Origin: Ruditapes philippinarum
Taxonomy: Eukaryota
Length of the DNA: 64,000 bases
Direction of reading: 5' to 3'
NCBI RefSeq assembly: GCF_026571515.1
Contig: NW_026854044.1
Span: forward strand, 186,001 to 250,000
Below the pieces are notes generated by a model, which did no database searches, was not told the origin of the DNA, and worked only from the letters and a program-made list of their open reading frames with translations. Position 1 is the first letter of the stretch; each line of letters starts with the position of its first letter. Of the stretch, positions 21,201 to 62,554 are shown one piece after another. Made by a program: the position numbers and the translations under genes.

Positions 21201-24200
21201 GGAAATTCAAGGTGAGCACTGTTTTACCTAACAACGTGTTAGCAGTAAAAATAAAATATTTATTTAAAATGACTTTTTCATACTTTAGATCAATATCTCA
21301 ACATTAAAATAGAGGAAATTTTGAATTACCTATTTGAAAGAATTCCAAGAGATTTAAATATGTTTACAAAGTTGTTCATTATCAATGTTTCGCTAAAATA
21401 TAATTGAAAATAAAATGTTTTAAAATGAATAGTTTTCACAGTAGAGAAATCTGCCATTTTTTAATCTTAATATGCATGTACCGAAAAATGCAATTTTATG
21501 TACCGTATTTTCAGACAGGTAAAAGTAATAAGCATTATTAAAAAGAATAATGAAAATTATTTATGATAACATAACTCAACAAGGAACGATTTTCATAGAA
21601 CATCGCACCCATCCCCTCCAAACCCCCGACATTATCAAACCACACCGACAAGAAACAATGCAGAGTACCGAACCGAAATTAGGAGAGGGTACGTGAAAAG
21701 ATGGTCCTTGCTTTGTAAACGCACATTTTATCTCTTCAAAGATTCTTACAATTATGAAATTGTAGCTTACCACATATATTTTTAGTTATAAAGATTGTTG
21801 ACAGGTTATGAAGCCCTATATAAACTGCTATTTGTAAATATAACCTGAGCCGCTAGGCGAGGGTTATATTGCAAAGAGCCGTTTATATACGACCATATAT
21901 CCTGTCAACGATCTTTATAACGAATTTATAATACAGCAACCATCATTTTTTAGAAAAAAAGGTAACATTTCTTCATGAATCGATAGCAGCCGTGTATATA
22001 AAACTATATAAACGTCACGATTATCCAATGAAAAGCGACGTTACAAACGTGCAGTATTATAATGTAATCTGTATTTGAGCCGTGTCACGACAAAACCTAC
22101 ATAATTCGCTATCAGTTTCTCTACTTGTAATAGGGTTGGTAAGCGAACAGCATGGATCCTGATCAGACTGCGCGGACTGGTCTGGATCCATGCTGGTCGC
22201 AAACCCACTATGTTGGTTTTGTCGTGACACGGCTCATATGTATTATACATGTACGTATTTTAGATACAGCAGACGACACAAACATGCTCCGACCAGCACC
22301 AGCGTTCTCGAATCTTCCAGACGTATCGGAAAATAAATTTCCAACTTCCGAAACAAGTGACATTGACCTTACTGAAGAAGTAACACATGGCCGGATGTTG
22401 CATAAGTAATATTTTTATTTTCTAACTTCATATAATCAACATTTGTTCTAAGTTGAAATACGAAAAGATGGCGCGAAAATCATCTGATAGTGGCTTACCT
22501 TTGTACTGCTAAAACAGAAGATGATTAAGCTTTGCCACCAAAATAAAAATGTCAACCGGACAGTTTGTCAAGGCTCAAAACTGTTGGTTATTCATTTCTT
22601 TTTTAATTTTGATATTGAAATTTCTTCATATTAAAATGGACTGTTCCAAATGCAAAGCAGGGCCAATCCATTACAGAAAGTCAGCGGGTTAAGGGTTAAA
22701 CTGATATTAATTTTTGTTGAATCGTTTGATATAACTTTTCTCTTGATCTGACATGGTGTCGTTCACAAGAATAAAATGATAAATACGAAGAATTCTACCC
22801 AAAATTCACACCTGACTTTTGGTTTAGAGAACAATTTATTTGTAAACAACGCAGTTACTAATAATTAAAAGTAATTAAATATTAGTTGCTTTTTGATATA
22901 AGGTTGTATTAAATAAAAAATAACATTTTGTAATAGAATGGTTGAAGATCTATTTTGTTGTACGCAAAAACATATGATCTATGCGTAATTGTTAATACCT
23001 ATTTATGAAATTAAAATAAACTATAAAACAAACTTACTCAAATATTCAAGATTGCCATTAGTTAAACATTTTATGTCTTTAATATTATTACTTTTTGTTT
23101 TCTTTGCTTTTGTCATGTGACCACAGACTTAATGTATTTGTAATCATTGTTTGTAATCGAGATATTTGTAAATGTATAAATTACCAAAATAAACTATTTC
23201 TTCTTTTTCTTCTACTACTACTACTTTTACGTCTTCTTCTTCTTCTTCTACCTCTTCTTCTTCTAAGTAAAGAGAGTTGTTCGATTTCAAATATATTCAC
23301 AGATGCCATAAGAATACTCACCTTGTCGTAGACTTATCAGCAGAAGATCGCACAGAGATAGAAGCAACTGTTGATGCAGACGTTGGTCCAACAGGCACCG
23401 ATCACGTGACACATTTCCAGGAAACAGAGGAACCAACCACATCTGCAGCAGACGACAATGAATCGGAACCGGAAGAAGAGAACAAAGATGATGACTCAGC
23501 AAATCAGCAAGAACAGGTCCAAGAAAACACAGTTGAGGCACCAAAGGTATATTGTTATTTTTTACATTTCAGGCGTCAAAATTAACGTTCCTCAGATTGT
23601 TCCTCAATTGAGATGAGATTGGGAAACTGAAATTATTATTCTACTTATCGGTACATCATATCTTCTGATTCTGAATGCAATACGTCATAATTTTTTCTGG
23701 TTTGCTATACGGAACTTCAAATGATATTGAATGGTTTCTCGAGTAGATCTAGCTAATGTTGAAGAGTGCTATTTATAGATTTATCTCCCCTGGATCTTGC
23801 CTTTGTTTACACCTGGTATTGCTCGAGAGTTAACGTCATAAATGTGCATTGACGTTGCATTTTATGCAAATGACCTTTATTTCTTTAACGTTAAACTGGA
23901 TTTTCCACAACTGATCAAATATTTAATAAATGATAAATATCTAGAGTAAAAACAATTTTAAATCCTGTTTTAAATTAACTCCAAATATATTATTTTCAGA
24001 CACAGAATATTGTTACCACAACAACCACTGTGACTCCATTAGCCGATTTAACTCATGCCATGGGTAAGTATTGAATTTTTTTTTCTGGATCTGGGAAGTC
24101 AACATGCCGGCCAAGTGCCTTTATTCTCTAGTTTAATAGCGAGCTCGACGAGCTGGCCCGAAGGGCCTGCTCGCAAAGCGAGCTTTACGGTAACGCGAGT

Positions 24201-26324
24201 ATACCTGCTAAGTGATGGTTTTGAAAACTTTCGTCCAAAGTACCGAATTGGACACATCGCAACATTTCGTATTTAAAGAAAACGATAAAAACTGAGGAAT
24301 TCTGACTGAAAACGGATGTGTAGACTGGTCACCCGCACACGTCTATGGGAACCATAATTGGACAGGGAACCAGAATAACGGAAGCTGTGTATAAAAAATG
24401 AAAATCGAAGACGCCATTTTGTTTGAAAAATCTGATAAATAAAAACAATTTTTTGTCAAATTTTGTTGTGAAAACTATCTAGAATGAAAGAAAATGGTCT
24501 AACTAAGAAAATGGATCCGAACACCAATATCTTTTATTCAGTCGTTAACGCTGTACAGACGTTTAAAGTATTGTTTACGTGACGTCACAATGTAGCGCCA
24601 AACAGCACGTGCAAAACAAACAAATCAAGTACACTATTTTAATGTCGCAAACGTGTTAAGGTTTACATTTATTTCACTTAAAATAATCTTTATTTCGCTT
24701 GAAAAATTATAGAGTGAAATAAAATAAACAAAGTTTTATCAACGTTTTCAAAACTCGTTATTCATTTCACGACAGGGGCGGAGCCGTATTTAACACAGTA
24801 CGTGTGACGTCACACGCACTCCTTACTGCATTTGAAATAAAAATGAGCGATTATTTCATACTATTTCACGTAAAAAGTACATCGAGCTCGCTTTGAGGCT
24901 TTGCCTTTTTCATATTATTATGGTTTTTGTTATTGTTTTCATTTGGGTTTTACGACGCACCAACGCCTAAAGTTCATATGGCGACTTTCAATCTTTACTG
25001 ATGGAGGGGGGGGGGGTATCAGGTGCACCTAACATGGACGATTTGCATGTATTTTGGATGGTTTTATGTTATACGCGGAAAGTCCGAGCGGGGCCGAAGG
25101 CCCCGCGAGGGCTGTAGCGCTCTTAGATAACATGTATGACGCGTATCAGTTCAAAGGAAATCAAATTCAAACTAAATGAAAATTTCAAAAAAATATATAT
25201 CCTATACCTAATGAGCTGTGAAAAAAACCTTAGTTAACTGGGCGCCGCCATTTTGAAATCCTTTTGAGCGCTTTTAATGAGCGTCTACATAATTCAGACT
25301 ATTGCAGACGCATGCTAAGTAACACTTCCGGTGAAAGAATGATGAACAAAATCAGAAAATAAACCTACATTTCATTGATAAGAATTATAGTAACGATTAT
25401 AAATATAAAAAGTTATTCAAACATCCTTTTTGATAAATTAGCACATTAAAAATAACGTAAAAACAACAACTGTGATTAGAGATTAACAAAAATGGCGGAC
25501 GGGATTTTCCAAACGCCGACGCATGCGCAGAGGTCCGGAGTTTTTCGGTTCCGATGATAGGTTGAACACCACCAATTTATTCGTTTTGTTTATTCAAAAA
25601 AGATCTGGTTTACATGTACACTAAATATGTTATGCTAAAATCATAATTCATAAGAGCTTTCCGCGCCATAGGTAGCACCTAATTTCATATTAATTATATA
25701 GACTATTGGGTATACTTACAGGGGAAAGAATGATCAGTTATGTCATGCTGCTATGAAAGTAGCACATTTAGTCGCACTATTACATTATAGACAACATACT
25801 GACCAGTCTTAGAAAATTGTTATTGGTAATAAAACCGGAGACGGCTTGTACCGGTTGGTCTTGTAGTGGGTCTCGAACCAGAAAGTACATGTATTATAAT
25901 ATGTATGTTCAACGTCATGACGTACATGTATAACACGTCATAACAAAAGACTCTTTGTCAGTGTATGTTTTATTTGTTCTTGTCACTCTTAACTCCTTGC
26001 TGTTACATATACTACACTTCAAACCCCAAGTTACGAATTTGTACGTATACAACATGGCACGATTCTTATGAAATGAAAACACTGTACTGCCACTTCAGTT
26101 CAAACCTTAACAAGGCCATAATCTTATCTTTAACTGATTATAATTATTTTCTTCCAGGTCATGCTGACGAAAACACGACATTCATTAACAAGCTCCGGAA
26201 GCGGGTAGGCCTTGGCGGAAGAAGCTCTTCATCACAGAGGCTGAAAAATGCAGCACCAAAAATTGAGGCTTCCGGTTCAATGAAACATTTCTCTCCAGCC
26301 AATTTCCTCAAGAGAAAGCGATAA
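3269..26324 (+). CDS. Uncharacterised multi-exon protein (~476 aa): coiled-coil N-terminal half, acidic/low-complexity C-terminal half, basic tail
   Basis: Phase-consistent GT-AG exons: 3269-3295, 3808-4099, 5268-5345, 6033-6127, 6877-6988, 20449-20537, 21091-21211, 22264-22405, 23303-23546, 24000-24063, 26158-26324 (1431 nt, no internal stop). AATAAA at 26344. Possible optional exon 21533-21688. Heptad-like segments include LYSQLQELQEFNKSLIQDRQDL, LSRKIEELSFLQDRLENAQKE and LKETNLEHEIGDLIKEKQQLWKRCLDLESCLEEIQ. Confidence 0.8.
4826..5170. mobile_element. Kolobok-like MITE
   Basis: TTAA|AGCAGCATGCCTC...GAGGCATGCAGCT|TTAA: TIRs with RR..YY ends and a TTAA TSD. Confidence 0.75.
7896..8100 (+). 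mobile_element. Degraded tRNA-derived SINE
   Basis: GTTAGCTCAATAGTTAGAAC (A box), GTATCGATTACC (B-box-like), CCGTCCGG...CCGGACGG acceptor-like stem, followed by a SINE body. Confidence 0.55.
8262..8450 (+). mobile_element. Degraded tRNA-derived SINE
   Basis: GGGAGCAGTGGCCTAGTGG (A box) ... GGGTTTGAGCC (B box), followed by a GACACCAGTAC body. Confidence 0.6.
11690..12300. repeat. TGACCTTTGACC-rich interspersed repeat (Helentron/HINE- or pearl-like by inference) nested in the IS3EU element
   Basis: Repeated GTGACCTTTGACCTCTAAGTGTGACATTGACC and ATGAAAATCCAATCATCA units. Related copies at 13130-13700 and 41570-41790. Confidence 0.6.
13130..13700. repeat. Second TGACCTTGACC-type interspersed repeat nested in the IS3EU element
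   Basis: GTGACCTTGACCTT...GGTGGACATTTGTGCCAAGTTATTTCAAAA units, with inverted partial units at 13180-13270. Confidence 0.55.
13780..14920 (-). pseudogene. IS3EU-type DDE transposase (integrase-core) remnant with stops and frameshifts
   Basis: Minus-strand translation gives FKLGFKYTEILGFLFNRHKILLSMRQLYRFL, CIWHLDGY.RLKPFGFCIHGIID..RKLIWLEVSDTNNNP, GKSTSNQRVERWLGSLRQ...WWLSFLKDLRDS and CFMDLIQTHLDRIAQHWNTHAIR...GKPDVMF. Confidence 0.85.
17370..19115. repeat. ~82-bp minisatellite (~13 copies to 18440, resuming at 18970-19115)
   Basis: Unit approx. CCCTTACGCCATTTGCAATGTTTTCAGGGGAGGTCACTCTAACTGACTCTTTTTTGAGCGCAACAGTTACCTCCCTTTGAA; starts at 17372, 17454, 17536... Confidence 0.9.
18445..18968. 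mobile_element. MITE inserted into the 82-bp minisatellite
   Basis: ATAAGTGG...CCACTTAT inverted ends and TTCGCAAA subterminal motifs; the satellite resumes after it. Confidence 0.55.
21780..22063 (+). mobile_element. Short one-ended hairpin element
   Basis: Inverted arms GTTATAAAGATTGTTGACAGG...CCTGTCAACGATCTTTATAAC around the apex TGAGCCGCTAGGCGAG. TTATAATA after the hairpin is inverted at the far end (TATTATAA). Confidence 0.7.
22077..22235. mobile_element. Sola-like MITE (internally deleted copy)
   Basis: GAGCCGTGTCACGACAAAACC...GGTTTTGTCGTGACACGGCTC TIRs with AWWT flanks; same family as 33295-33529. Confidence 0.75.
23198..23263. repeat. (CTT/CTA)n microsatellite
   Basis: Direct reading; source of the spurious poly-Leu ORF. 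Confidence 0.8.
24133..24915. mobile_element. Non-autonomous element with subterminal IRs and a terminal hairpin (HINE-like architecture)
   Basis: AGCGAGCTCGA (24138) / TCGAGCTCGCT (24882) inverted repeats and an adjacent GGCCCGAAGGGCC hairpin. The internal ~140 bp (24471-24612) is shared with 38681-38822. Confidence 0.55.
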
Positions 26325-33063: not shown

Positions 33064-33560
33064 GGGGCAACCGTGGTCAAGTGGTTAAGGTCGTTGACTT
33101 CAAACCATTTGCCCCTGACCGAAGTGCGTTCGATTTCCGCTAGGGTCTTTGGATTCTTTCATGTGATGAAGCTATCCCGCTTTCGGAACGTCGGTGGTTC
33201 TACTCATTTACCCGTTCGTGCCTGAAATAATTTAAGAAGAGACATCTGATGTTGTCCTTCACCAATAAAGCTGGAAAAAAGTCATATGACATATGAGTCG
33301 CGTCATGACAAAACCAACATAATGGGTTTGCGACCAGCATGGATCCAGACCAGCCTGCGCATCCGCGCAGTCTGATAAGGATCCATGCTGTTCGCATACC
33401 AACTCTTTTACAAGTAGGGAAACTGATAGCGAACAGCATGGATCCTGATCAGACTGCGCGGATGCACAGGCTGGTCTGGATCCATGCTGGTCGCAAAGCC
33501 ATTACGTTGGTTTTGTCGTGACGCGGCTCATATATTGCGTTGGCGCGACGTAAAATCCAA
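33064..33560 (+). mobile_element. tRNA-derived SINE interrupted by a MITE
   Basis: GTGGTCAAGTGG A box, GTTCGATTTCC B box, Meta-type body; the tail resumes at 33530 after the MITE. Confidence 0.75.
33295..33529. mobile_element. Sola-like MITE (full length)
   Basis: GAGTCGCGTCATGACAAAACCAAC...GTTGGTTTTGTCGTGACGCGGCTC, almost fully palindromic, with a 4-bp TSD ATAT. Confidence 0.85.
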
Positions 33561-33944: not shown

Positions 33945-34900
33945 TATATAAATAACACATGGGTTTGTGGGTAACAGTAAAAATATCATCCCAAGGAAAA
34001 TACTGTTACCCGAGGCGAAGCCGAGGGTAACAGTTTTTTCCTCGGGATGATATTTTTACTGTTACTCACAAACCCATGTTTTATTTATTTTATTACCCCG
34101 AACAAAAATACTGCAATGATCTAAAATTGTCAACTAAATCTTGAACTGTAACAAAAATAAACCAAGAGTAACAATAACTTAACTGTCCTTACCTTTTAAG
34201 TTTTAAGTGTACTTTAGGCCTACTTGAGAAGTTTTCTTTTTCTTTTATTTTTTATGCAAGTGATGATATCTACAAATCATAAACATACAATAAGCTAGGT
34301 TTTATTCAGAAAACAAAACACTAACCAATTTACACGGTTATGATCTGTGAAATCTGATCCTTCTGTTTCCAGAATATTCTTAGCATGGTTTTTGACAAAA
34401 TAACGATGATATCCTATGTCTATCCACCATATCTGTAACGTTTCACTGATTAAAATTGTTAGATAATCCTTTGTTGCATGCTTAAATCGTCTGCATGTTC
34501 CAGTTTGACACATAATTATTTACATTGCAAGTACTTCCGTTGAAAACGGATGTTCACTTTTTGACTATTCAACAAAAAGATATTTTATACACGAAAAGCA
34601 CACCAGGGTGCAAACAACTAAATGTTATGGGTGTCAAAGTTACTCCAGAGAAAAAATTGATGTCAAATCGGGGTTTAACGTCGAAAATAAGAATGAATCG
34701 AGAAAAAAATGGCGGCCATTTTATTTTATTTTATTTAGAAAATAGACCACGTGACCAGATTTTATACTGTTAAAAAATACTGTTACCTATGTAACAGTAC
34801 AAAATTCTTAGTCACGTGGTACACTTGCATTAACAGTAAAAATAACTCCCAGAGGCCTATGGGAAATTAGCATTACGAAAAAAGTGAGGGGTAATAATTT
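33945..34900 (+). mobile_element. One-ended hairpin element
   Basis: ~60-bp arms around CGAGGCGAAGCCGAG (34010-34025). TATTACCCC after the hairpin is inverted at the far end (GGGGTAATA, ~34888). Confidence 0.75.
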
Positions 34901-35199: not shown

Positions 35200-36246
35200 A
35201 TGAGATTCTGTGCTTTTGTTTTAAGGATTCAAAAATGTTTAAGAATATCAAACACATTCAACTTAGTGACTACGACTGTGACCATTACATTACTGTGGAC
35301 AGTTTTATTTTATCATATTTTTCGTGGTCCAGTCTATGTGTCAGTGTCAAAGATCATGTCGTCTGCTATTGAAAATAATTACACCATTTACCGGACATTT
35401 GATAAAGTAAACATTATTGAAATGCCAGTTATTTTAGGCCGGAAGGATATTAGAGGATATGGGAACTGTATTCAAAGGAAACCGGAAGTTGTGATGATCG
35501 GAGTGCCAAAATGCGGAACTGGTTCTGTGCGAACTTTTCTAAACGAGCACCCTTATGTTGCCATGGAGATGAACTCGGAGGGAGTTCAGTATTTTAATTT
35601 AAGATATATGCGTGGACCGGAATGGTATCGGCATCAGATGCCATGCAGTACACATGACCAGCTTACAATTGAAAATTCTCCGCAATATTTTATCAGCGAA
35701 GAAGCCCCTGAGCGTATGTTTAAATATAATCCAAAAATGAAACTGATTCTTACAGTTCGAAACCCAATTTCAAGATTAGAATCCGAGTTTGTTCAAATGG
35801 CAGTCGGACGTCCTCAATTCTTAACAGGAACTACAATAGACGAAAACGTGATTGATCCGGAAACTGGTAAAGTAAATCGCAGAAAAACATTAGTGTCAAA
35901 ATCTATTTATATCAGATATCTTAAGAAATGGTTGGAATATTTTCCCGTAGAGCAAATACATATTGTTGATGGTGACGAATTTGCTAGAAATCCATCAGAA
36001 GAACTAAACAAAATAGAACGCTTTCTAAATGTTGAGAAGTTTTTCAAAAAAGAACATTTTGCGTATGTGGAAAACAGGGGTTTCTTTTGTTTACAAAGAA
36101 AGCAAAGTGTCGAGTGTTTAGAAAAAGGAAAAGGAAGGCTTCATCCATATATAAATCCTAATTTAATGCGAAAATTACAAAACTTTTACGCACTATTCAA
36201 CGAGGAACTATTCACAACATTTGGTAGACGTTTTAATTGGGCATAA
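35200..36246 (+). CDS. Heparan sulfate glucosamine 3-O-sulfotransferase-like (HS3ST1/5-like), intronless, 348 aa
   Basis: N-terminal hydrophobic anchor (VTITLLWTVLFYHIF); PAPS 5'-PSB loop IGVPKCGT; WYRHQMP; 3'-PB motif VRNPISRLES; WLEYFP..QIHIVDG; FFC...CLEKGKGRLHP. Confidence 0.9.
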   Translation: MRFCAFVLRIQKCLRISNTFNLVTTTVTITLLWTVLFYHIFRGPVYVSVSKIMSSAIENNYTIYRTFDKVNIIEMPVILGRKDIRGYGNCIQRKPEVVMIGVPKCGTGSVRTFLNEHPYVAMEMNSEGVQYFNLRYMRGPEWYRHQMPCSTHDQLTIENSPQYFISEEAPERMFKYNPKMKLILTVRNPISRLESEFVQMAVGRPQFLTGTTIDENVIDPETGKVNRRKTLVSKSIYIRYLKKWLEYFPVEQIHIVDGDEFARNPSEELNKIERFLNVEKFFKKEHFAYVENRGFFCLQRKQSVECLEKGKGRLHPYINPNLMRKLQNFYALFNEELFTTFGRRFNWA

Positions 36247-36630: not shown

Positions 36631-39221
36631 TTATCACATAATACGCGGCGCAGGAGTGTAACAAGTAGAGATTTTGATGCTAAAGCATCAAGTCGATCGC
36701 CGGATAGAAAATGATTGTATCAACATAAATATAAAAGAATATCAGTTTAATGAATGGTTCAGGTATAAAGAAAAGAGGAACAATATGTTGAGTAACTGTT
36801 TATTCACAATGAAACATCACATATGAAGCAAATTTGCTTATCAATATTGACAAGGAACTGCTACGATTATTAAATAAGCAAGTATTTCGTTAGTTTACGT
36901 AACTTATTATGATTTATGCTAAAGATTTTATTGATAGTATAGATTTCGATATTAAATCAATTAATATTGCTCGATGGCCTACAGGCGGTAAGTAGGACGA
37001 AGTTGTGACCTAGTGGGCCAAGTTCGAATCTTTGAAAACACCTTTTGCAGTTTTCATAAAACTATTTTTTTTATTATTTCTTTTAACTATATGAAACATA
37101 AGTTGATAAATTGTGTTTCATTTATAGCATTTTTTTTATTTTATAATTTTGATTAATTTTGTAAGGCGAGTGATATTCTTGTAATTCTACTTGTAATTCT
37201 ACCTTATACACAGACATCGAAATCCGTTTTGTATACTTCAGAATCGAATATTTGAAAATATATATGTTTTAATTATTGCATGAAACAATGCAATTCTACC
37301 GTAAAAGTGGTATCTGCATAAAAAACATTATTTTTTTGCACTATCGAAAAAATAAACTATTTAGTTGAAATCAATATTCCTGTCGTTACCTACGATATAG
37401 TAAACGTTTAATTGCCTTTCAGTTCGATAGAATATTAACAAAAAGATATTTTATTAGTTTTCTTTATTATGTATCTAATACGACCCGTCATACCGTTTTG
37501 GCAACCTGCGCGACGGAAATCGACGGAATATAACGAAGACGACGATTACCACTATTTATTTCAATAAAGGTGCCTCTTTAACATAAATCTATTTTGTGAT
37601 GTTCAACCTAAACTAAACTATTGAACGTTGACAGAAAGGGCCACGTTTAACCCTTTACCAAGGAAAAATGAAAAGGTTTTGAAAATTTATTTAATTCTTT
37701 AATGTGCAAATTATGAGTATAAAGACCTTTCTAATGATATAAAATATGAAACTGATTAATGAAAGATAACTTTGTAATTATTTATACATTTGCATCTAAT
37801 TAGCCGCCATACTGTTTTCCAACTATTCACAAGTCTTATCAGCAATCTGTTACTATTAATAGATTGTTTAACACTAACATTACAACGTGTAGTCATGTGA
37901 TTCTTACAATAGAACAGGGAGAATCTGTTTGTAATAAGATGAAATAATGAAATATAATAGGTCTCATAAGATATAACAAACAAATAATTTAAATGTGTCA
38001 TTTCAATTATCATTCATGATTTATCAATCATAAAATAGCAACGCTTGACACCTAGAAAAAAAGAAAAGTATCCCTATATTTAATGACTGGTCCATAGGGA
38101 TACGTTATTAATTCATTTTATGAAAATTGTAATCTTGCTTTTTAAGATGTCAATATTTGTATATTTCATTTCATTTAGCAATGTTACTTTATTTTTGAAT
38201 TTTTAAGATTATGAAAAATAATTGTGGTCCTTAATTGTTCAGTAATTGATTTGTTTTTATATTCAGATTTTAAGGCCTTCTCCTACCATAGCTATAATAT
38301 TAAACTGTTACAAATATAGTCTACCGGCGACTAATAAAAACGATATTACACTAGTGTCATTTGCGCTATATTTATACATAGCGTTAAAGCGCGCTAATGT
38401 TAGCGTTGTACACTATAGGCGCGTCATTGAAAAATTACTCATATTAACAGTTTACTGTTCTTATTTTATATATGTGATAAATAGAATATTTAATTTAATT
38501 TTACCCATGAAATATGGTGCTATATCAGTCAAATATATTTCATATTTTTTAAAAATAAATATGAAATATAAAATGAAAGTGGGCGGAGTCAAAACTCATA
38601 TTTATTTTAAGGGACTTCTTTCGCCGTTTTGTTTGAAAAATCTGATGAATACAAAACAACTTTTCTTGAATATTGTTTTGAAAACTATCTAGCATGATAG
38701 AAAGTTGTCTAACTAAGAAAATTAATCCGAACACCAATATCTTTAATTCAGTAATTAACGCTGTACAGACGTTTAAAGAGTTGTTTACATGACGTCACAA
38801 TGTAGCGCCAAACAGCGCGTGCTTACGCATAAATTACTGCGCGCTGTACAATTGCAGTTGGTAGCAAACAAGGGGATTTGTTACCATTTTCTTTGATAAT
38901 GAAATTAAATAAAAAGGTTATTTTTTCGTTTTTCGTGAAATATGATATATATTTTCACTCAACATGATAAAATGCCACATATTTTCACTCGCCGTGCCGG
39001 CTCGTGAAAATATGTGGCATTTTATCATGTTTCGTGAAAATATATTCCATATTTCACGAAACGAAAAAATATCCTCTTAATATTCGTGTAGATTCAATAC
39101 TAAATTTATTAAACTCGTTGAATAAAACAATATTATGCTCGCCAGAGGCTCGCATAATATGATTTTATTCAACTCGTTTAATAAATTTAGTATTAAACTA
39201 CACTCATTCAATATCCTCTAT
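36631..39221 (-). mobile_element. Hairpin element B inserted in A
   Basis: Ends TTATCACATA (36631) and hairpin 39085-39205 followed by AATATCCTCTA. Apex CTCGCCAGAGGCTCG. TATGTGATAA at 38471 is the inner inverted copy of the far end. Confidence 0.7.
38491..39079 (-). mobile_element. Hairpin element C inserted in B
   Basis: Hairpin 38920-39070 with apex CTCGCCGTGCCGGCTCG, ending AATATCCTCTTA. Removing C rejoins B as GATAAATAGAATATT|ATATTCGTGTAG. Confidence 0.7.
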
Positions 39222-41569
39222 ATAATGCTGTTCGATTTTCGCACCCTACTATTGCGAAGATATAGAAATTATTAAACAAAAGAAATAATAAGAAAAAAAA
39301 AACGTTATTTTATCAAGTTTTCAACAATCAAAACTTACGTCGTAAATATTAAATGTGTTAACATCAGAGCCCCATTTATCATTCTTTTATGTATGAAATA
39401 ACGTCAGCTTGTTTATGAATGAGTTGTTTACTAAGGATGACGTCATTACGCTGCTTACGGTTTGGCGCCGTTTTTTCAAAATATTTATTAACTGATATAA
39501 TATGGATCTAATATGTGGCGTTAGTGTATGTGAGTTATTATTTCGGTATTGTATGAAAAGAAAACATTATGCGAATAGAAAATGTAAATAAAAATGCTTT
39601 TTATTATTGCTTTAAAATGCTTTGTAAACTATACAATCGAGTGTGAAAACATAATGTTCAGCGCATATACAAGTAGTCCCTAACCGGTGTTTATTGGCAG
39701 TTTAACACCAGTTTTTTCCTTCTTTGTCTAAAGTGGCAAAATCACGTGAGTGTAAGAATCAACTTTTTTCCCCTTCAATTACGTAACAATTAGGTATTCA
39801 ATTAATCACCAATAGAATTACTTCTGGTTTGCGGTGTAGGTGAAAGTGTGACAATGTTCCGATTCTTTCTTAACTTTAACAATTATTAATGAAATACTAC
39901 CTGAGGCAAACAGGTCGTTCTTGTATTAAGATAGTACGACATCATTTCACATCGTTAATTAATTAATGTGTCTCACCAGAGGCTATGGATAAGAAAAATA
40001 TACATGGTTAAATGTCATGTCAATGTTAGAAATCATGTTCGGATTAATGACAAAAGTTACCAGCATTTAGCTGGCTAAGATATCGACACGTGCAAATGTG
40101 TGTAATGAGGAAAGAGGTCGTTCCTTATTTGTGAAAAAAAAATCCAAGTAATGGCATTTGAAGTATTTAATTAATCAGATTATAAAGATAAACATATAAA
40201 CTAGCAACGCACCCGAAATATCATTCTTCTTTAAAACAACAACTACCCCCAAAACAATTACAACAACATTGACAGTAAACTAATGTTGGCTCGCTGTTTT
40301 TTTCTTGTCTTTTAGTAAGCAATAATTTGTTTAATCATTATTTTAAAAGGCTTTCTATAAGAATGACTTTCCACATGTCCTAAATTAAGGGACACAAACG
40401 CAAACACTATAATACACCACGATCCTGTTTATGTCTCCGACACAGGGTCATTTAAATTATAGACAGATTCGTGGAAATGCAGCAAATTCTGCAACCATCA
40501 GTGCTATTAAAAGCAAATGAGCCATTAATGTATATGATCTTGTCAACTAAACGCTTTAAAAGTAATTTCTGTGGAATAAATGTTGAGAATATTTTTTTAC
40601 GTCTTTTTGTTTATTGATTAATTTGAAATTTGCAAAAAAGCGTCTTGAAGAGATGATTTATTTCCTTGAACAAAAACAAGGAACATTTTCTTTATTTTCA
40701 AAATCTTGCAGACATAGCGGACAAACTGCTTTCGAAAACTGCTGCACGAACATCCACTGTACCAGCGATATGAACTAAAACTAACCTACATTTTGGATGT
40801 CGCATCTTGGATTATAGAACTTTGGTGTAAGTAAAGAACATGAATAACAGAATAAAAGAACATAATAAGCCTTTCATGGTAAGTTCATGGTCCTACAGCT
40901 GACGGACATGGTGCTTATCCGAAAACTAATACATTGTCAATTCACACGCGCGACTTTATAGGGAAATTTTGTACTATATTTCCACAAAAGAATGTGTACC
41001 ATTCCCTTCAGCAGAATGACATTTGCTAACTTTGTCTATAAATGTCTATTAATGACATTGTTTAACAATGTACAAGAAAACATGAAGTCTTATTAAAGCT
41101 AGACTTCACATAAATCACGGATTTCGCAAGAAGAAAAAGTACAATTAAACAGAATATAATCATGTTAAGCTTTGATATTTCTGTAAAGGTAGCCTTGTGA
41201 AAATCCATTTTTAAAGTGGCATTTGGAACATCTAAGTGCTTATGATAAGTGTACTGGTAAAAGTCAAAATAACTTTACATTTTGCCATATATACCAAAAA
41301 CAAATATGGAAAAAAGAAAATCTTCAATACTAGTAATCGATGTGACCTACGGAAATTTCTATTTATATCGTTCAGAATATATCGCTATTTTTGAAAAATA
41401 AATAAATATAAAAAAAATTTGGCAGTCATTTTATAGTTTAAGTAGATTTAAATTTTATCAAAAACAATTATTACTATTTTAATATCGATTATGTATCAAT
41501 CACCATTGTTACAGTCAATCTTTTGAATTATATTATTCTATATCAAATGTCAATATTAGTCTGAACTGA

Positions 41570-42777: not shown

Positions 42778-42789
42778 TCAATCAATCAG

Positions 42790-42834
<45 letters not shown>

Positions 42835-42850
42835 TAAATAAATAAATAAA
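42778..42850. repeat. (TCAA)n(TAAA)n microsatellite
   Basis: Direct reading. Confidence 0.95.
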
Positions 42851-47714: not shown

Positions 47715-49591
47715 AATTTTTGCGTTACGTACTTTGGGGTCCAACCAAAAGTGTGTGACGCACTTTGATGTCAAAATTTGATCAAAATGTGCGTTACACA
47801 AATACATGCTTTGACATCAGACAAACGACTGCACTTTGGGATCAATAAGAATGAAATTTGAGCCGCGTCACGACAAAACAAACATAGTGGGTTTGCGACC
47901 AACATGGATCCAGACCAGCCTGCGCATCCCCTCAGTCTGGTCAGGATGCATGCTGTTCGCTATCAGTTTCACTACTTGTAATAGGGTTTGTAAGCGAACA
48001 GAATTGATCCTGATCAGACTACGCGGGTGCGTAGGCTGGCCTGGATCCATGCTGGTCGCAAACACACTAAGTTGATTTTGTTGTCACTCATTTATTAATA
48101 TTTTATAATAATAGAAATTGTAACCGAATACATGTAAGACGAAATGTATTAAGTTGGTTAACAATAGTAGACGATCGATGATTTTAATTTGTTATATATA
48201 ATGGTTTCAATTTATTATAATTATGTTTATATTCAATTATTCGTCTCATATTGGCCACAAAGTAGTAAGATGCATAAACATGTATGATGTGTATTGTGTG
48301 TAATAATAAATTAAATATATATCCATGAAGCCGATAAATGTGGAGATTGCATGTCAGACATATTTCCATCTAATTAAAATCCTGTTCATTTTACGATATG
48401 ATATGTTAAGGACCCATTAAAAACCTGGATTTACCCTATTTCTAGTTATATTAAACAGAGGTAACCTTTCTGAATGGATTTAATTATATTTTTTTCTATG
48501 TTGAATGTTGTAGAAAAGACTTGCATTGAAAGGATTTCAGGCTGTGTCAATCTGCCACCAGAGGAAAAATGAATTATTTAAATGAAATTCACGTCCAATA
48601 ATGGCAGGAATTAATTTCAATCACATAATTTTGCGGAAAAAGACATCTCGTCTCATTTCAAAATGGCAGCGAATTTGGTGGTACATCAAACAGATACGTT
48701 TTCCAAAACCTGAAGTATCACCCAAAATAACATGTAAGTTTATTTAGATTCAAAATATAAACTGTCCCGTGCTGAAAATTAAAGTTTACATCAAATTTTA
48801 GTCCTTTCAGTTTATTTTTAGTCTCAGGACGGCGCCCAAAATGGCCGCAGATTAAAAATAAGTCGTTGCGGAAATATTAAAGCACATTTAAGAAAAGTTT
48901 AAATTTATACTTATAGGCATAAGTTCCTTTCATAAAATTACATGACGGGTACCTGACAAATGTAGAAGTCATGAGGATTTACTAAATTTAATGTAAGGCA
49001 TATTATTAATGTGAAAAGGCTTTGTGTAACTTTTTCAGTATATGTTAAATTTATATCTAACTTACTTATTACAAGTCATTTACATAGGAATTGAAATGCA
49101 CTGAGATGACATTATTTGCATTTTATTACACCCCATCATACTTAATATGCTGTTAAATATGGCACCAAAAGTTATGTAATACATGGCTGACAGAACAGGA
49201 TATTTTTTGAATTTGTAGGAATACATTCGCAATTTAAGTACTATAGTATAATTGCAGTTTGTTATTTCGCAGCAATTTTTAGATATTTCAAGTGATAAAA
49301 TTAATAAAACACTTACCAGTTAAGCATCAAATACATATTTTTATAGCTGCTATGAACATCAGAATTTAAATGACTATTATTATTGATGTATATAAGTATC
49401 GACTCCATCTCAAATATTTCAGTGTTGCAGATCTAAAATAAGTCAGCACTCAGTATTTATGCAGAACTCAGTTGGTACCTTAAAAGTGCTGGATTCGAAA
49501 GTGCGTTGATATGTAGCATATTTCTTACTTATTTCTTTCAGTTTCTTTATTTTGACCCCAGAGTGCGTTTGACCCCAAAGTACGGTGTTAC
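47715..49591. mobile_element. Non-autonomous element with a TGTAACA/TGTTACA terminus (Ginger-like by inference), copy 1
   Basis: CGTACTTTGGGGTC (47728) and GACCCCAAAGTACGGTGTTACA (49591) are inverted. 48690-49590 matches 62730-63700 in reverse complement. Confidence 0.55.
47860..48089. mobile_element. Sola-like MITE
   Basis: GAGCCGCGTCACGACAAAAC... family; ATTT on both flanks. Confidence 0.75.
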
Positions 49592-52239: not shown

Positions 52240-52415
52240 NNNNNNNNNNNNNNNNNNNNNNNNNNNNNNNNNNNNNNNNNNNNNNNNNNNNNNNNNNNNN
52301 NNNNNNNNNNNNNNNNNNNNNNNNNNNNNNNNNNNNNNNNNNNNNNNNNNNNNNNNNNNNNNNNNNNNNNNNNNNNNNNNNNNNNNNNNNNNNNNNNNNN
52401 NNNNNNNNNNNNNNN
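52240..52415. other. Assembly gap
   Basis: Run of N. Confidence 1.
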
Positions 52416-52790
52416 AGAAATATTAATGAAAAAAATTGTGTGTTTTCATTTTGTATTTTCACTGTAAAGAATTTATTTTTCACAGAAGTGAAACATATTT
52501 TCCGTATTTTCACTGGTGTCATGCCGGACAACATTCTTTTAAAATCTGCCATTACCAAAATTTAAGGGAAAATCTTTCGAATTGTAATGTCAAAAAGAGA
52601 AAAATGTATATAATAAACAGAGCATTCGAGTTTTTCTATAAATGCAAGATTTATTTTCATCTTGTGGTATGAAAATTATAATATTTCACTCGTGGCTACC
52701 GCCACTTATGAAAAACATTTGTATTTATTTTCATACCACTCGATGAAAATAAATTCTGTATTTATAGAAAAAATGGAATATCCTCTATTT
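52416..52790 (-). mobile_element. One-ended hairpin element (partial, abuts the gap)
   Basis: Inverted arms 52630-52775 around CTCGTGGCTACCGCCACTTA; terminus AATATCCTCTA as in elements B and C. Confidence 0.7.
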
Positions 52791-53592
52791 GTTTTAGTTA
52801 TTTCTTATTTATTTATTTATTTTCTTTTTGTTAATATTCTTCCTTTTTTATTACAATATTTTCAACTTATTTATTTATATTTGTATACATATATATCTTT
52901 TTAATCATTATTTATTTTAAATTAAAAAAAAAGAAAATGTTGTAGATCATGAAATTTAATCAGTATCGTGTTAAAGTGATATACTCACATTAATAATTAT
53001 TGAGGCAATTAATTGTCTATGTCTATAACGATGACGCATAGAAAGATTTTGAAAAACGGTGCACGGGCAATCGGATAGCACGAATTGGCTTAAATAACAC
53101 GACCTGTGGTAGCTTGAGTGCCATTGGTTGAATAGTTAGTACATTCCGCTATTAGTTTTAAGTTAAAATAAAAAGTCAAAATGAATGAATAATTATAATT
53201 TAAAAGATTTTGTCTTTTTATTTGCTTGAAAAACTCCAATAATTCACATAAACAGCTCATCCTGTAAAGAATTGTTCATTATCATGATTTTTACGGAATG
53301 AACGCACAAAACTCGTACTGGACTTGCCCACAGCACTTTCAAATATTAAAAAAATATTTAATAATCGATAATCAATAATCATAGAGTTTAAAATTCGTCT
53401 AAACGCTAGACCTTTATTAAGAAGCCGAAATCAAAAGTGCGACATGCCTTACAGCGATAGTGACACTTGACCATATTTTCCCTCTAAGTCTCTTCTATGC
53501 CAAGATTATTTTGCTTAAAAACTCTTGCTTGCACTGAATAATAACCCTTTCTGAATCGTCAGTTTCAGCACGTAAGTCACGGTATTCAAGTG

Positions 53593-57702: not shown

Positions 57703-58328
57703 GTATCACACTTGATTATGTACATGGTTGGCTTGATTTTTGCAATTGAGGGATAGAACAAGCATGAATATAATCAAATACATGTATGTTAACAATTACT
57801 ATATATTTACGACTATTGAAGACATTTGAATTCTGATTACAATACATAAAATAAAATGTAGTCCAATGTATTCTAACTTTGTGTTTATTTCTCTCTGCTT
57901 TACGCTGACTTCGCCACCTTTTTTGGCTATATCATGGCGTTATATTGATTTAATTAACTTGCCTTCCTGTATAAAGAAACAAGTACTCAAGTGACTGGCT
58001 ACCTGAGTTATGCGGACGACAATGAACTTGGAAAGCGGTCTGTGAACTATACATTATATTTTGGGGATTTCTCAAAACACGTTAAGCTGTATGCAAGTCT
58101 AATACAAATAATTTCTGATTTTTAGATACATTTTATTAATATGGTATTTGAAAGAAAAACCAATCTAATAAGATATAATAGAGGAATCACAACCAATGTC
58201 TCTCAAAAGTCTTGGCATTTTCCATTTCATAAATTAATTATAAAGTTCGTGATTTTCACGGACTAGTTCATCGAGCGGGTAGCGTAGTCTGCGCCTGTTG
58301 TTTTCTTGGGGTTTCCTCACTATCGTTC

Positions 58329-59404
58329 TCAGAAGAGGAAAGCCCAGCAGCTCATATTGTCGCAAATGTCTCGGGTGGGAGCGATGCTGTATGCAGTCGC
58401 TAGATCCTGATCGACTGATTGTGATTGTTGTCCATCTACAAGCTGTGTCTTCGGCTGTTCTGCTTGTCCAGGTGCTGATCTGTCAACAAGGCTGCGTTCT
58501 GCGTCTTCAATGGCCGCAAAAAGCTCTCTGAAACAATATGCATATGCATATACATGTAACAGTGTTTATAATATACTAAGATTTTGTTACTGATTGCTTT
58601 TTGGAAAATATTGTTGTACTTTACGAAACCAGTATTACATTGATCGTAATGGTTTAAAATCTAGTCTAATCATGTGTAAAAATGCCTTTAAATCGTCGTG
58701 TACCCAAATATGACTTGTTTTGGTAACATGTATTTCGTTTTGTAAAACAAAATTCTTGCGAAGTAGAACACAACGATTTTTACAATTAATGTAATTACAT
58801 TAATATTATTGCCTTATGTCAATGTTCCAGATCTGTTTCTGTTGTTTGGCCATCAACTTGTTTAGTTTTGTTAACAGACGGTCCGGTATCATACCTGTTT
58901 CCCAGTTGCAATTTTTATGTTTGTTTTATAAGCTACATGTAAATAGGATTTTACATCAATTTTACTTCATCGTCTGTTGTATTCACAGGTTTATTTTCTT
59001 GCGCTGTAATATCGTTACTGAAATAATAATAATAAATATCATAACATAACATAACAGACTATAGTTTTTTAATTGTAAAATATGTAAAATACATTGTACA
59101 TTCAGTCTCTTGTAATTCTACTCAAAGAATGGCTATATACATGTATACAATGTAATGTTTATCTTTTATGTTGAAATGTTTGTAATTGTGAACAGATGAG
59201 ACGATAATATATAAAATTAATAACAATTCAACTTGTCAATTTAGTTCCCTTTTCCGAGAATAACAATACACTTTCGTTTGCTGCTCGTTATGATTCTGGC
59301 TGCTAACATACCCGACATACAGAACACTATCTGGCTTCTCTAACGTGAGTGTCTCGGCCGTTAAGGATACAGTCCGAGGCCTCTTTCCAAAAATCAATGG
59401 GTAC
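58329..59404 (-). CDS. 3' exons of an unidentified gene (possibly a pseudogene)
   Basis: Phase-2 exons 59404-59270 (YPLIFGKRPRTVSLTAETLTLEKPDSVLYVGYVSSQNHNEQQTK), 59017-58955 and 58527-58329 (ELFAAIEDAERSLVDR...DICDNMSCWAFLF*) splice in frame. The upstream exon-like block 59926-59697 has stops in all frames. Confidence 0.45.
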
Positions 59405-59429
59405 CTAAGACAATTTATTGAATGACGAT

Positions 59430-59572
59430 TACAAACGCTTACGCACCCTATAACAAGTAGAGAAACTGATAGCGAACAACATGGATCCAGACCAGCCTGC
59501 GCGGATGCGCAGACTGGTCTGGATACATGCTGGTTGCAAACAAATAATGTTGGTTTTGTCGTGGCGCGGCTC
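59430..59572. mobile_element. Partial Sola-like MITE
   Basis: GCGAACAACATGGATCCAGAC...GGTTTTGTCGTGGCGCGGCTC right half. Confidence 0.7.
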
Positions 59573-62082
59573 AATTCTTTGTTTGTAAAAAAATAAAAAC
59601 TGACATATAGTTACATTTACCGTAGTTGTATGATTATCAATAAAACATGAAGCAAACTTTTTTTATTTTGATACAACCCCAGGGGTTAGTTCGTACTTTA
59701 CAGCTAAATTTCACAGTCCGTTTTCGTCTTCACAACTTTACTAGTCCCAAACCGATTTCCCATCATTAGACTCATTGCTCGAGACCAGCTATCATGGAGA
59801 TATTTTGTCTTATACGAGAATCGAACCAGAGGCCTCAGGATAACTAATCCGATTTTCTTTCCATGCGTACAGTGGTTCAGATACATAAAACCTCGCCTTT
59901 GTAAGCACTTATCATGTTATGCGAACTATTAATTTATCACGTACCAGTGACGTTTTGCGACTTCTTAAAACATGATATTGCACGGCCGAACCAATATTTT
60001 TGACGCGAAACCTTTTGCGTTATACTAAAGCGCTAAATGTAAGCGTTACACTACAGGCAATCCAATGAAAAATAATTCTTTTGAACTTTATACAGTCTTT
60101 ATTTGGGGGATGTGATAGATAGAATATTATGCTCATTCATGTTTATTTATTGAGCATTGAACGTACACTCATTCAAGATCCTCTCTATAAGTTGTATTCG
60201 ATTATACATGTAGTCGTTTCATATACTATTTACTTCAGTACAATGTATGTTCTTACTGAACTGAACCATATACATGATGATAGGGTGTCTAGCACAACAT
60301 TTGCGAAACGCCAAAATGTCTTACTTCAGACCGAGGTATCGTATTGTTCTTCATACAAAATATATGTCAAGTCTATATACGAGAAGAAACAGATAATAAC
60401 TTTCCAAAGACAAGGTGAAATCAAAGATTTTTCTTTCATCGAAAATGTCATCAAATTTGAGTTTATTACTCTTTACTACATGCAAAATGATACACTAACT
60501 CAGTCAATATAGTTGAAACAGTTGGGGCATACCGTGAAAATATATTGCTTTGATTACGAAATACAACGCCTTTTTAGTACGTTTAGTTAAAATACAATAT
60601 AAATATATACATTATTGTCGATTGGACAAGTTATACGACATGAATAACCTACATTTATATATTTGGTATGATCTTTACGCTTTTAGGCATTGTACAACTT
60701 TGTCACTTAGTCACAAACAAGCATTATTCGTCCCTAACATCACCTCATTTTTGTGTGTTTTTTTTTTCTGTTTGTGTGTGTGCGAATATGATTGAAAGAG
60801 ACAATCCACACAACACAATCTTGGTAACGTCGGTCGAAGAAAGATCTTCCCGTGTGTGGGGTTTATGCGTTTGGAGAAATTCGAAAACATAGAATTACTT
60901 ACATTGTCTAACTAGTATTTTGACAAACATTTGTCCTTCATGTCTTTCAAACATTACAGTATTAATAAACCTGCAACTGATCAGCCTTCTATCAAACAAA
61001 ACACATTTGTAAGTAGGTCTTTAATTCTACAGTAAGTATGGGCAAAAGAAAAGGTAGCCAACTATTATCAGTCTAACGGAATAAGAAATGCGACTATTTA
61101 GTTCAATGAAGTGCAGTGCCCCAATATTTGCGCCAGTAGGCCATTTTTATCCGAACGTTTTCTAAAACTTACCGTAGTAACATACCCGTCTTTGTGGATC
61201 TTGAAATCATGCTTAACATTTATATATAATTGAGTTCGCCAGGTCAAAGAAAAAAACACATTGTTGTTATATGACATATGTTTGTGACAAGAACGCGTCA
61301 CGTTGAGGTCGACTAGACCTTTTGTAAACACTATTTCTTCGAGATACATGTATCTAATGTTTTTCGAATTGCGTTATGCTGGATTAACGATTAATTGTTT
61401 GAAAAATTCGATGGAATACTTGAAAAAATGGAATATTTTTACAATTTAAGATATTTTATAAGCTATTACCTGCAATTAAATGTAGCCTGCGGTAACTTTT
61501 TTTGCCCAGAAAGGTACGGTGTTTCGACCAGAAGAATGACACTTTCATATTGCGTGGAAAAGTTATGGAAACGCTCTATCATCGTGATACATATGTACGT
61601 TAGCTTTAAGCCAATTTCCATGATAAACGTAAACATGTTGATTTTTAAATCATTATTTTTAAATTTATTTTAGTCAATATAGGAATGTAATGTAACAAAT
61701 TGATCGCCTCGAGTATTACAAATAATACTCATGCCGTTTTAAACAATTATCATTGTCGAAGCTGTATCTGTTTAGTTGAAGTAAAATAAAAATGGAGAAA
61801 TAGAAAGTAAGTTGAAATAAAAAGAAATTATACAGATATTTATTGTTTGTATATTTTATTATTTAGATTTATTATCTGCTATACATTTTATTATTTTGAC
61901 AATTAGCCATAGTTACCTTTAAACAATTATTCAATTATCTGTGGAATAGACACTATTATAAGTTTACACATTATTATATATGGTATAATTATATAACACC
62001 GTATAATGCAATTTGACATTTCCCCTAACTCAAGATGGAATTGTACCGAAGCCGGAAATATGTAAACAATTTAAATTAATAA

Positions 62083-62554
62083 TATACAGTTATTTCATAT
62101 GTGATTTGGAAACAGTCAATCTGTTGGCTCGAGATGGATGGGATAGTATTTTGAACTGTTGCCCAAGGCCGTAAGCCGAGGCCAACAGTTCAAAACACTA
62201 TCCCCGACGCCGAGAGACAACAGTTTGACTGTTCCCGAATCACATATGAAATAACTGTTTTATTTCCTGATCAGTAAATGTTTTAACAATACTTGCAGTA
62301 GGATAACGGAACAAGAAAATAGTTATGCGAATTTGTTAATAACTAAACTTTCTCAATTTAACAACATTTTAGCTATGTAACGTCACGTCTGGTTGATGAT
62401 CAAGATCGTTGGACGTTTCAAGGGGGAATCCTCTATGACGTCAGAGCACGCGAGGGAAACAGTCGAAACTATTGACCGTCAACTTCGCGAACGTGGACGT
62501 GTTTTAGAATTTAAGAAAACAGTAAAAACTTTTATATAGGGTATCAGGTAATAA
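62083..62554 (+). mobile_element. One-ended hairpin element
   Basis: Arms ACAGTTATTTCATATGTGATT...AATCACATATGAAATAACTGT around CAAGGCCGTAAGCCGAG. TTCCTGAT after the hairpin is inverted at the far end (ATCAGGTA). Confidence 0.75.

Follow-up and report, generated by a model that had tools for sequence, protein, structure and literature searches.

The hairpin repeats found in a stretch of the Ruditapes philippinarum genome are best explained as non-autonomous derivatives of CryptonA-type DNA transposons, elements moved by a tyrosine recombinase, in which one end is formed by a DNA hairpin carrying conserved G·A mismatches that can pair on one strand only. The stretch analysed, hereafter the window, is 64,000 nucleotides long (assembly GCF_026571515.1, contig NW_026854044.1, positions 186,001 to 250,000). 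Six repeat families in it, plus a seventh with a short hairpin, carry an apex of the form arm-YGAR-(mini-hairpin)-YGAR-arm', and most have one or two more YGAR/YGAR internal loops further out. The features are the following, window element B being named by its letter and the other families by number.

21775..22062 (+): family 5 non-autonomous element (about 288 bp, about 2571 BLAST candidates, 93% identity). Hairpin 21782-21924; apex TGAG 21846-21849, CCGCTAGG, CGAG 21858-21861; inner inverted repeat 21926-21938, whose inverse is the far terminus, 22050-22062.
33945..34897 (+): family 1 non-autonomous element (953 bp, about 2957 candidates, 95% identity), a polymorphic insertion. Hairpin 33947-34088; apex CGAG 34011-34014, GCGAAGC, CGAG 34022-34025; outer pair 33992-33995 (CAAG here, CGAG in the consensus) and 34041-34044 (CTCG here, a "corrected" copy); inner repeat TTATTACCCC 34090-34099; far terminus GGGGTAATAA 34888-34897.
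38490..39084 (-): family 3 non-autonomous element (about 595 bp, about 7684 candidates, 97-98% identity), inserted into element B. Hairpin 38908-39084; apex, written on the + strand, CTCG 38988-38991, CCGTGCCGG, CTCG 39001-39004 (on the minus strand, CGAG CCGGCACGG CGAG); second level 38958-38961 / 39031-39034, which reads CGAA/TGAG on the G·A strand.
38357..39224 (-): element B, in two pieces (38357-38489 and 39085-39224) split by family 3. Hairpin 39086-39203; apex CTCG 39138-39141, CCAGAGG, CTCG 39149-39152 (on the minus strand, CGAG CCTCTGG CGAG); second level 39114-39117 / 39173-39176.
52416..52796 (-): family 4 element (about 2670 candidates, 88% identity), cut on its left by an assembly gap. 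Hairpin 52609-52796; apex CTCG 52689-52692, TGGCTACCGCCA, CTTA 52705-52708 (on the minus strand, TAAG TGGCGGTAGCCA CGAG); second level 52661-52664 (CTTG) / 52739-52742 (CTCG).
62084..62554 (+): family 2 element (about 471 bp, about 803 candidates, 82% identity). Hairpin 62086-62258; apex CAAG 62164-62167, GCCGTAAGC, CGAG 62177-62180; second level CGAG 62130-62133 / 62211-62214; inner repeat about 62262-62276; far terminus 62540-62554.
25071..25350 (+): left end of a seventh high-copy family (about 2199 candidates), with its right boundary undefined. Short hairpin CGAG 25085-25088, CGGGGCC GAA GGCCCCG, CGAG 25106-25109; the polarity is the same, with the hairpin at the left and G·A on the + strand.
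2326..2416 (strand not assigned): one decayed arm of a hairpin of the type found at the Crypton locus L056 (88% identity).
7454..7474 (-): degenerate CTCG ... CTCG site with weakly complementary flanks, not assignable to a family.

The first-pass annotation had described CGAG direct repeats around short GC stems at the axes of long hairpins, and this observation is confirmed, every main site being present in the sequence as described and the second-level loops in the arms also being real. Of the weaker sites that it listed, that at 25085 is real, but it is a short hairpin at the end of a separate family and not the axis of a long inverted repeat; the site at 7455 folds at only -3 kcal/mol; that at 2417 is the decayed end of the L056-type arm; and 36509 carries no CGAG pair. 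The assembly gap (52240-52415) does not affect the family 4 hairpin, which lies wholly to the right of it. The family 4 copy itself is cut by the gap, since all genomic matches start at the first base after it, and the left side of the gap shows no homology to that family, so that continuity across the gap is not established.

The enrichment and orientation of the motif, which had been set beforehand as a test, are far from those expected by chance. In a 149-kb sample (the window plus locus flanks, with family 1 masked), 5 of 16 CGAG or CTCG direct pairs spaced 3-16 nt apart have complementary 10-nt arms, against 141 of 18090 (0.8%) for all non-palindromic tetramers (Fisher p = 1.1e-7). In 11 folded hairpins, 15 of 19 2x2 loops are GA/GA, 3 are CpG-decayed versions of it, and none is TC/TC, while five other palindromes in the window have no GA/GA loop. 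Genome-wide, the pattern CGAG-GC-NNN-GC-CGAG occurs 1572 times, the reversed control 3 times and the fully paired form 19 times.

The families share one plan. One end of each element is formed by a hairpin of 50-180 nt, a 9-14 nt inverted repeat lies just inside it, and the inverse of that repeat is the far terminus. The stem is interrupted by one to three symmetric 2x2 loops, 5'-Y-GA-R-3' opposite 5'-Y-GA-R-3', the innermost of which flank a mini-hairpin of 2-5 bp. Architecture and polarity are the same in 6 of 6 long-hairpin families in the window, and in the 25085 family. When the two ends of an element are joined in silico, the stem extends in all six families tested, with the junction in a 2-7 nt bulge.

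The link to a recombinase came from a search of the genome with the PF12012 (DUF3504) profile, which gave 149 matches. Two families of autonomous elements, X (6 copies) and Y (2 copies), are 2.2-kb units holding one long ORF and bounded by the hairpin and by the inverse of the inner repeat. Other DUF3504 loci (designated L, with a number), L055/L056 and L059, also have the hairpin downstream of the ORF, with the G·A strand antisense to the gene. The ORFs match DUF3504, QRICH1 and Phage_integrase; those of L043, L046, L056, L059 and L041 match PF12012 and PF00589 and align with the catalytic R / H-x-x-R / H / Y motifs (GLR, NHSAR, GHR and a final Y). A sequence search of the PDB found only QRICH1. 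These recombinases are only 23-57% identical to each other, yet all keep the hairpin motif. However, about 8 of 22 DUF3504 loci had no such hairpin within ±1.5 kb, and L057 has a G·A hairpin on the other side of its ORF. A search of metagenome contigs with a single recombinase protein returned three environmental contigs, L063, L072 and L077 (recombinase 43-56% identical), that carry the same hairpin downstream of the gene and on the same strand; L063 also has the terminal repeat.

Within the window the connection by sequence rests on element B alone, whose hairpin is 82% identical to that of Crypton Y and whose inner repeat is the same. BLAST of the window families against the Rep loci and the Crypton loci of the genome found a link for no other element. 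For families 1-5 no autonomous partner was found, and only architecture and polarity are shared with the recombinase-bearing units. Nor does the window contain a recombinase gene or remnant; the catalytic motifs belong to the autonomous relatives and not to the window copies.

The apexes appear to be maintained rather than decaying. Among the X, Y and B hairpins, 28 of 64 stem pairs show double compensatory change while all three YGAR/YGAR loops are invariant, and TGAG/CGAA variants keep the flanking pairs. Compensatory change could nevertheless arise from arm-to-arm templated conversion rather than from selection on pairing.

The family 1 insertion is polymorphic: contigs from four sequencing runs join 33944 directly to 34898, without target-site duplication, and three nested family 1 insertions show the same G|T junction (...GAGAG|TTTAAG... 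and ...AACAG|TAAAAATATC...). Published Cryptons are said to have 4-6 bp terminal direct repeats. Here the letters shared at the junctions number only 0-2 for family 1, and perhaps 5 (TTAAT) for family 3 in element B, where the empty site used for comparison is a diverged paralogue. The absence of a duplication, together with an inverted repeat that is terminal at one end only, is not what is expected of a MITE of a DDE (cut-and-paste) transposon. Breakpoints of Logan contigs cluster at the hairpin apex, but these are likely assembly artefacts at palindromes.

Several origins for the apex itself were considered and rejected. The idea that CGAG...CGAG is a target-site duplication of a nested insertion was rejected, since the innermost "insert" would be only 7-12 nt and the tetramers recur at up to three levels. 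Fold-back priming as the origin of the palindrome was rejected because it would give CTCG opposite CGAG. A parvovirus-like flip/flop was rejected, as only 1 of 26 scorable family 1 copies has an inverted apex, which fits sporadic template switching, as do the "corrected" copies.

How, then, could these elements move? The shared plan, its polarity and the precise insertion of family 1 are shown by the analysis; the strand asymmetry is taken from published chemistry; and excision, recognition of a folded strand and recombination are inferred, no circle, single strand or protein-DNA contact having been observed. Only assembled contigs of DNA runs were available for this, and tandem genomic copies would mimic circle junctions. 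On one strand, always the one antisense to the recombinase gene, the loops can form tandem sheared G·A pairs between Watson-Crick pairs, the NMR-defined "CGAG block", which forms stable hairpins (PMC10085684), whereas on the other strand the same positions are T·C/C·T mismatches. In the model that we favour, with moderate confidence, the element would leave as a circle or another joined form. Joining of the ends would let the terminal repeats pair, lengthening the hairpin and placing the junction in a small one-sided bulge. The recombinase would recognise this folded site on the G·A strand, much as integron integrase recognises a folded attC bottom strand through its unpaired features, and would recombine it with an A/T-rich target, precisely and without duplicating the target. 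The G·A blocks would act as marks for strand choice and positioning, and only masters that keep them would propagate, which would explain why the blocks persist even though templated "correction" removes them in about 1% of dead copies. It should be noted that nearest-neighbour DNA folding favours the G·A strand by only 0 to -4 kcal/mol, and in two copies not at all, so that strand choice by stability is not shown in silico.

The interpretation given in the first-pass annotation is thus partly supported. It held that the motif is strand-polarised and maintained and belongs to mobile elements, which is the case; the partner enzyme that it could not confirm is probably a Crypton-type tyrosine recombinase, to which element B is tied by sequence and families 1-5 by architecture and polarity only; and of the parallels it drew, with REP/IS200-IS605 hairpins and with integron attC sites, the latter is the best fit. 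On the other hand, the elements are not unrelated, as it had stated, but share one architecture, similar termini and one polarity, and so form one superfamily whose arms diverged through compensatory change. Its view that structure rather than sequence is conserved is not supported, since the Y-GA-R tetramer is itself conserved, and the GNA loops that it stressed are common but not universal, those of X, Y and B being TCT. Its proposal that a single-stranded or extruded form is what the enzyme recognises remains an inference.

A more far-reaching reading, which is possible but tentative, is that animal CryptonA transposons recombine through a folded single strand: the excised element would rebuild a long hairpin across its joined ends, tandem sheared G·A blocks would mark which strand folds and where the recombinase sits, and integration would proceed by an attC-like single-strand exchange resolved by replication. 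This would be the first eukaryotic tyrosine-recombinase element shown to use structured single-stranded DNA, and it would also explain why its ends converge on the Helitron2 plan.

One alternative, which we consider unlikely, is that the tetramers are read in ordinary duplex DNA, CGAG direct repeats at fixed spacing being half-sites for the recombinase or its DNA-binding domain that give direction to an otherwise symmetric palindromic site, with no need for a single-stranded or extruded form. Indeed, the tetramer sequence itself is conserved and not only the pairing geometry, the computed stability difference between the strands is small, and classical tyrosine recombinases act on duplex sites made of inverted binding arms (PMC3212892). 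However, the TGAG/CGAA and CGAA/TGAG variants change positions 1 and 4' together, which keeps the flanking pairs of the folded form and is not predicted by a duplex half-site model; the stems co-vary strongly; and the two terminal repeats lie 140-180 bp apart in the duplex and come together only when the hairpin folds.

The main rival reading, and the one first adopted, is that the elements are non-autonomous Helentron/Helitron2 elements (HINEs), moved by a Rep/helicase HUH enzyme, the hairpin being the 3' terminator of rolling-circle transposition and the recombinase-bearing units captured cargo or coincidence. The plan does match published Helitron2/HINE features, namely a terminal repeat at the 5' end and its inverse just upstream of a 3'-terminal hairpin (PMC3627910, PMC4067079), in all families. 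There is no target duplication, tandem head-to-tail copies exist, HINEs are abundant in bivalves (PMC7492417), and the genome holds at least 94 Helitron-like Rep matches, including an intact Rep-PIF1-endonuclease ORF of 2158 aa. This reading was abandoned as the best one, and is now thought improbable, because complete 2.2-kb units with these ends encode only a tyrosine recombinase, in at least four diverged families and in environmental contigs, and because the verified insertion sites are G|T (A|C in the other orientation) and not T|T. In addition, the only Helentron read end to end shows no such hairpin in 18 kb, the hairpins are 5-10 times longer than HINE palindromes, and the Rep loci show no similarity to the window families.

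Finally, it is very unlikely that the mismatches have no function and are a by-product of how long palindromes arise or survive (long perfect palindromes are unstable, so some asymmetry is expected), or that the hairpin, which lies in the 3' region of the recombinase transcript unit, acts as a 3' UTR structure or small-RNA precursor, since any asymmetry would protect a palindrome from deletion, yet the same Y-GA-R tetramer recurs in the same polarity and at several levels across recombinases only 23% identical and in other organisms, other palindrome families in the window lack it, and on the sense RNA the loops would be C·U/U·C, which is not a stabilising motif.

Cryptons were defined by their enzyme, and their ends and mechanism in animals have stayed open. 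Defined ends would allow Cryptons and their very abundant derivatives to be annotated (the families described here together have tens of thousands of BLAST candidates), and some bivalve repeats filed as HINE/Helentron-like may need re-checking. The design is concrete enough to be tested at the bench, as to which strand, which mismatches and where the junction lies. If the folded-strand reading holds, the integron/CTX style of recombination extends to eukaryotic mobile DNA, and it would offer a compact, sequence-programmable recombination site.

Among the closest known systems are the Crypton transposons of the CryptonA/DUF3504 group (Goodwin 2003; Kojima & Jurka 2011, PMC3212892), in which a single ORF encodes a tyrosine recombinase with R-H-R-Y motifs and a DUF3504/QRICH1-type N-terminal region, without a reverse transcriptase, insertion makes no target duplication, and non-autonomous derivatives far outnumber autonomous copies. 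The published description, however, is that animal Cryptons have "no terminal repeats" and that Cryptons in general have only 4-6 bp direct repeats, while here the ends are defined by a long hairpin with conserved G·A blocks plus an asymmetric inverted repeat, with little or no junction microhomology.

Integron attC sites, and CTX-phage attP, are recombined as folded single strands by tyrosine recombinases. They too are imperfect palindromes in which conserved unpaired features, rather than the arm sequence, are maintained, one strand only is marked, and the arms diverge through compensatory change. Here the recombinase family is different, the host is eukaryotic, the marks are symmetric tandem G·A blocks rather than extrahelical bases, the site is 2-3 times longer, and single-strand recombination is only inferred by analogy. 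Helitron2/Helentron elements and their HINE derivatives (PMC3627910, PMC4067079, PMC7492417) share the asymmetric terminal inverted repeats, one at the terminus and the other just inside a terminal hairpin, the lack of target duplication, the tandem copies and the great abundance in bivalves; they differ in their Rep/helicase partner, in hairpins of roughly 10-40 nt and in TT targets, and G·A blocks are not described for HINEs. Lastly, the CGAG block, or pyrimidine-GA-purine tandem sheared G·A motif, of DNA hairpins (PMC10085684) has the identical tetramer arrangement, a C:G pair, G:A, A:G, then a G:C pair, shown by NMR to be stable and to stack across strands; there the blocks are consecutive repeats in a human promoter oligonucleotide, whereas here single blocks are spaced 15-30 bp apart within the long Watson-Crick stems of a mobile element.

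The window is an AT-rich stretch (about 32% G+C) of a 1.41-Gb, 15,874-contig eukaryotic assembly. The only ORF of more than 180 aa that it contains (35200-36246, plus strand; 348 aa) encodes a sulfotransferase-domain protein (PF00685, E = 7e-17). The first-pass annotation described hairpin elements carrying a direct CGAG repeat around a short stem at the axis of a long inverted repeat, and this observation held: all six main apexes are present in the sequence, as follows.

34011, plus strand: CGAG GCGAAGC CGAG
21846, plus strand: TGAG CCGCTAGG CGAG
62164, plus strand: CAAG GCCGTAAGC CGAG
39004, minus strand: CGAG CCGGCACGG CGAG
39152, minus strand: CGAG CCTCTGG CGAG
52708, minus strand: TAAG TGGCGGTAGCCA CGAG

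Each apex sits at the axis of an inverted repeat with arms of 50-90 nt, and a second YGAR/YGAR pair lies 15-30 nt further out in the arms. Folding of 11 such hairpins with DNA parameters gave 19 2x2 internal loops, of which fifteen are GA/GA, three are CpG-decayed versions and none is TC/TC. In contrast, five unrelated palindromes in the same window have no GA/GA loop. A different palindromic repeat family, built on GCGAACAGCATGGATCC... and used as an internal control (window 33291-33533, 47867-48087, 22135-22208 and 59467-59542, and positions 25-90 of L054, a sequence outside the window), has no G·A loops. In a 149-kb sample, 5 of 16 close CGAG or CTCG direct pairs have complementary arms, against a background of 141 of 18,090 (p = 1.1e-7). 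Genome-wide, CGAGGCNNNGCCGAG occurs 1572 times, whereas the same pattern read backwards occurs 3 times and the fully paired form, CGAGGCNNNGCCTCG, 19 times. The first-pass annotation had named mismatches that are no more frequent than others, or randomly oriented, as what would refute it; the mismatch is instead hugely enriched and not random.

The annotation had regarded the elements as unrelated. BLAST against the whole genome, used to delimit the repeated units, showed that they are one kind of thing, with the following window coordinates.

Family 1: 33945-34897, hairpin at the left end
Family 2: 62084-62554, hairpin at the left end
Family 5: 21775-22062, hairpin at the left end
Family 3: 38490-39084, hairpin at the right end
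Element B: 38357-38489 plus 39085-39224, hairpin at the right end
Family 4: from at least 52416 to 52796, hairpin at the right end

Whenever the hairpin is on the left, the plus strand reads CGAG, and whenever it is on the right, the plus strand reads CTCG. Polarity relative to the element is thus the same in 6 of 6 families. In each family in which both ends could be read (1, 2, 3, 5 and B), a 9-14 nt sequence just inside the hairpin is the inverse of the far terminus. The far end of family 4 is lost in the assembly gap, a run of 176 N at 52240-52415 that cuts this copy; one BLAST row for this family (assembly contig C2531, 238337-238397) points into the stretch that reads N. The site at 25085 is the left end of a seventh family of about 2199 candidates, with a short hairpin and the same polarity.

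A search of the genome with the PF12012 profile, made to test whether Cryptons are the source of these repeats, gave 149 matches. Among 22 loci read, family X (6 copies) and family Y (2 copies) are 2.2-kb units, each bounded on one side by a 160-175 nt hairpin with three G·A levels and on the other by the inverse of the inner repeat. Two further sets of recombinase loci, L055/L056 and L059, have the hairpin in the same place. In every one of these cases the hairpin lies downstream of the ORF and the G·A strand is antisense to it. The opposite geometry was found at L057 (2843-2951), where a G·A hairpin (TGAG ... CGAA) lies upstream of a DUF3504 ORF, on the sense strand; it may belong to a neighbouring element. 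In both L055/L056 Crypton copies, a family 4-type hairpin element lies in the same position, beyond the hairpin-distal end of the recombinase ORF and in the opposite orientation (L056:2791-3151 and L055:354-671), which could reflect either a composite that moves as a unit or a duplicated locus. The ORFs match DUF3504, QRICH1 and Phage_integrase and keep the catalytic motifs, although they are only 23-57% identical to one another. Window element B is 82% identical to the Y hairpin and shares its inner repeat. The window itself holds no recombinase remnant, and no partner was identified for families 1-5.

The apexes are maintained rather than decaying. In an alignment of the X, Y and B hairpins, 28 of 64 stem pairs show changes on both sides that keep the pair, while all three YGAR/YGAR loops are invariant. 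The variants TGAG/CGAA and CGAA/TGAG change positions 1 and 4' together, so that the flanking pairs of the folded form are kept. In dead copies the tetramers decay by CpG transitions, and occasionally they are "corrected" to the complement of the other arm, as in copies L001, L010 and L019 of family 1 and copies L043 and L049 of family X. One copy, L010, has the whole apex inverted. These are the marks of template switching within a hairpin. Such switching would erase the mismatch, yet every family consensus keeps it. The motif is also found in other organisms: a search of metagenome contigs with the Y recombinase gave 44 loci, many of them too short to judge, among which L063 (56% identity), L072 and L077 (about 44%) carry a hairpin downstream of the gene with CTCG...CTCG on the sense strand. 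L063 also has the terminal repeat.

Joining the far end to the hairpin end lets the terminal repeats pair in all six families tested, and the junction then falls in a 2-7 nt one-sided bulge. Contigs from four public DNA runs, from four studies, join 33944 directly to 34898, one run (X1) showing a slightly different empty-site allele. The family 1 copy is therefore a presence/absence polymorphism, inserted between G and T with no duplication. In the same contig comparison, many joints in other copies start at the hairpin apex (window 34014-34022); these are probably assembly artefacts at a palindrome, but apex-centred deletions are not excluded. Three of 30 family 1 copies (L007, L010 and L012) are inserted at one and the same G|T site (AACAG|TAAAAATATC) inside the hairpin arm of another family 1 copy, and seven of 30 left flanks end in ACAG, suggesting a preferred target that resembles the element's own arm. 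Family 3 sits in B at an A/T-rich site, possibly sharing TTAAT. Head-to-tail tandem dimers of families 2, 3 and 5 occur in the assembly (contigs C1085:290238-291164, C6820:54098-55259, C1511:5758-6955 and C8240:161654-162225). They fit integration of a joined form into a resident copy, but also rolling-circle models.

We consider the architecture, the polarity, the conservation and precise insertion to be established by these data, as is the link to a tyrosine recombinase, which in the window rests by sequence on element B. That the enzyme recognizes a folded G·A strand is inferred. Computed energies favour the G·A strand by only 0-4 kcal/mol, and a model in which the tetramers are read in duplex DNA remains as a rival. 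The first-pass interpretation is partly supported; its proposal that an extruded or single-stranded intermediate is recognized by a mobilizing protein is still only inferred.

The reference survey of Cryptons found no terminal repeats in animal Cryptons, and a 2026 paper still describes Cryptons as lacking inverted repeats; we found no paper describing the ends reported here. The repeat-plus-terminal-hairpin plan is, on the other hand, the published plan of Helitron2/Helentron elements, and a Helentron origin remains a second rival. The genome has at least 94 Helitron-like Rep matches, many with open frames of more than 1500 aa. They include an intact 2158-aa Helentron ORF with DUF6570, Helitron_like_N, PIF1 helicase and C-terminal Exo_endo_phos endonuclease domains (L039:5546 to L040:2019, two extracted stretches of contig C14149), but this element shows no such hairpin in 18 kb. 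As for the mismatches themselves, CGAG opposite CGAG has been shown to form a stable block of two sheared G:A pairs between G:C pairs (PMC10085684). In the mechanism that we infer, the recombinase would recognize the folded G·A strand of the joined ends, as integron integrase recognizes attC.
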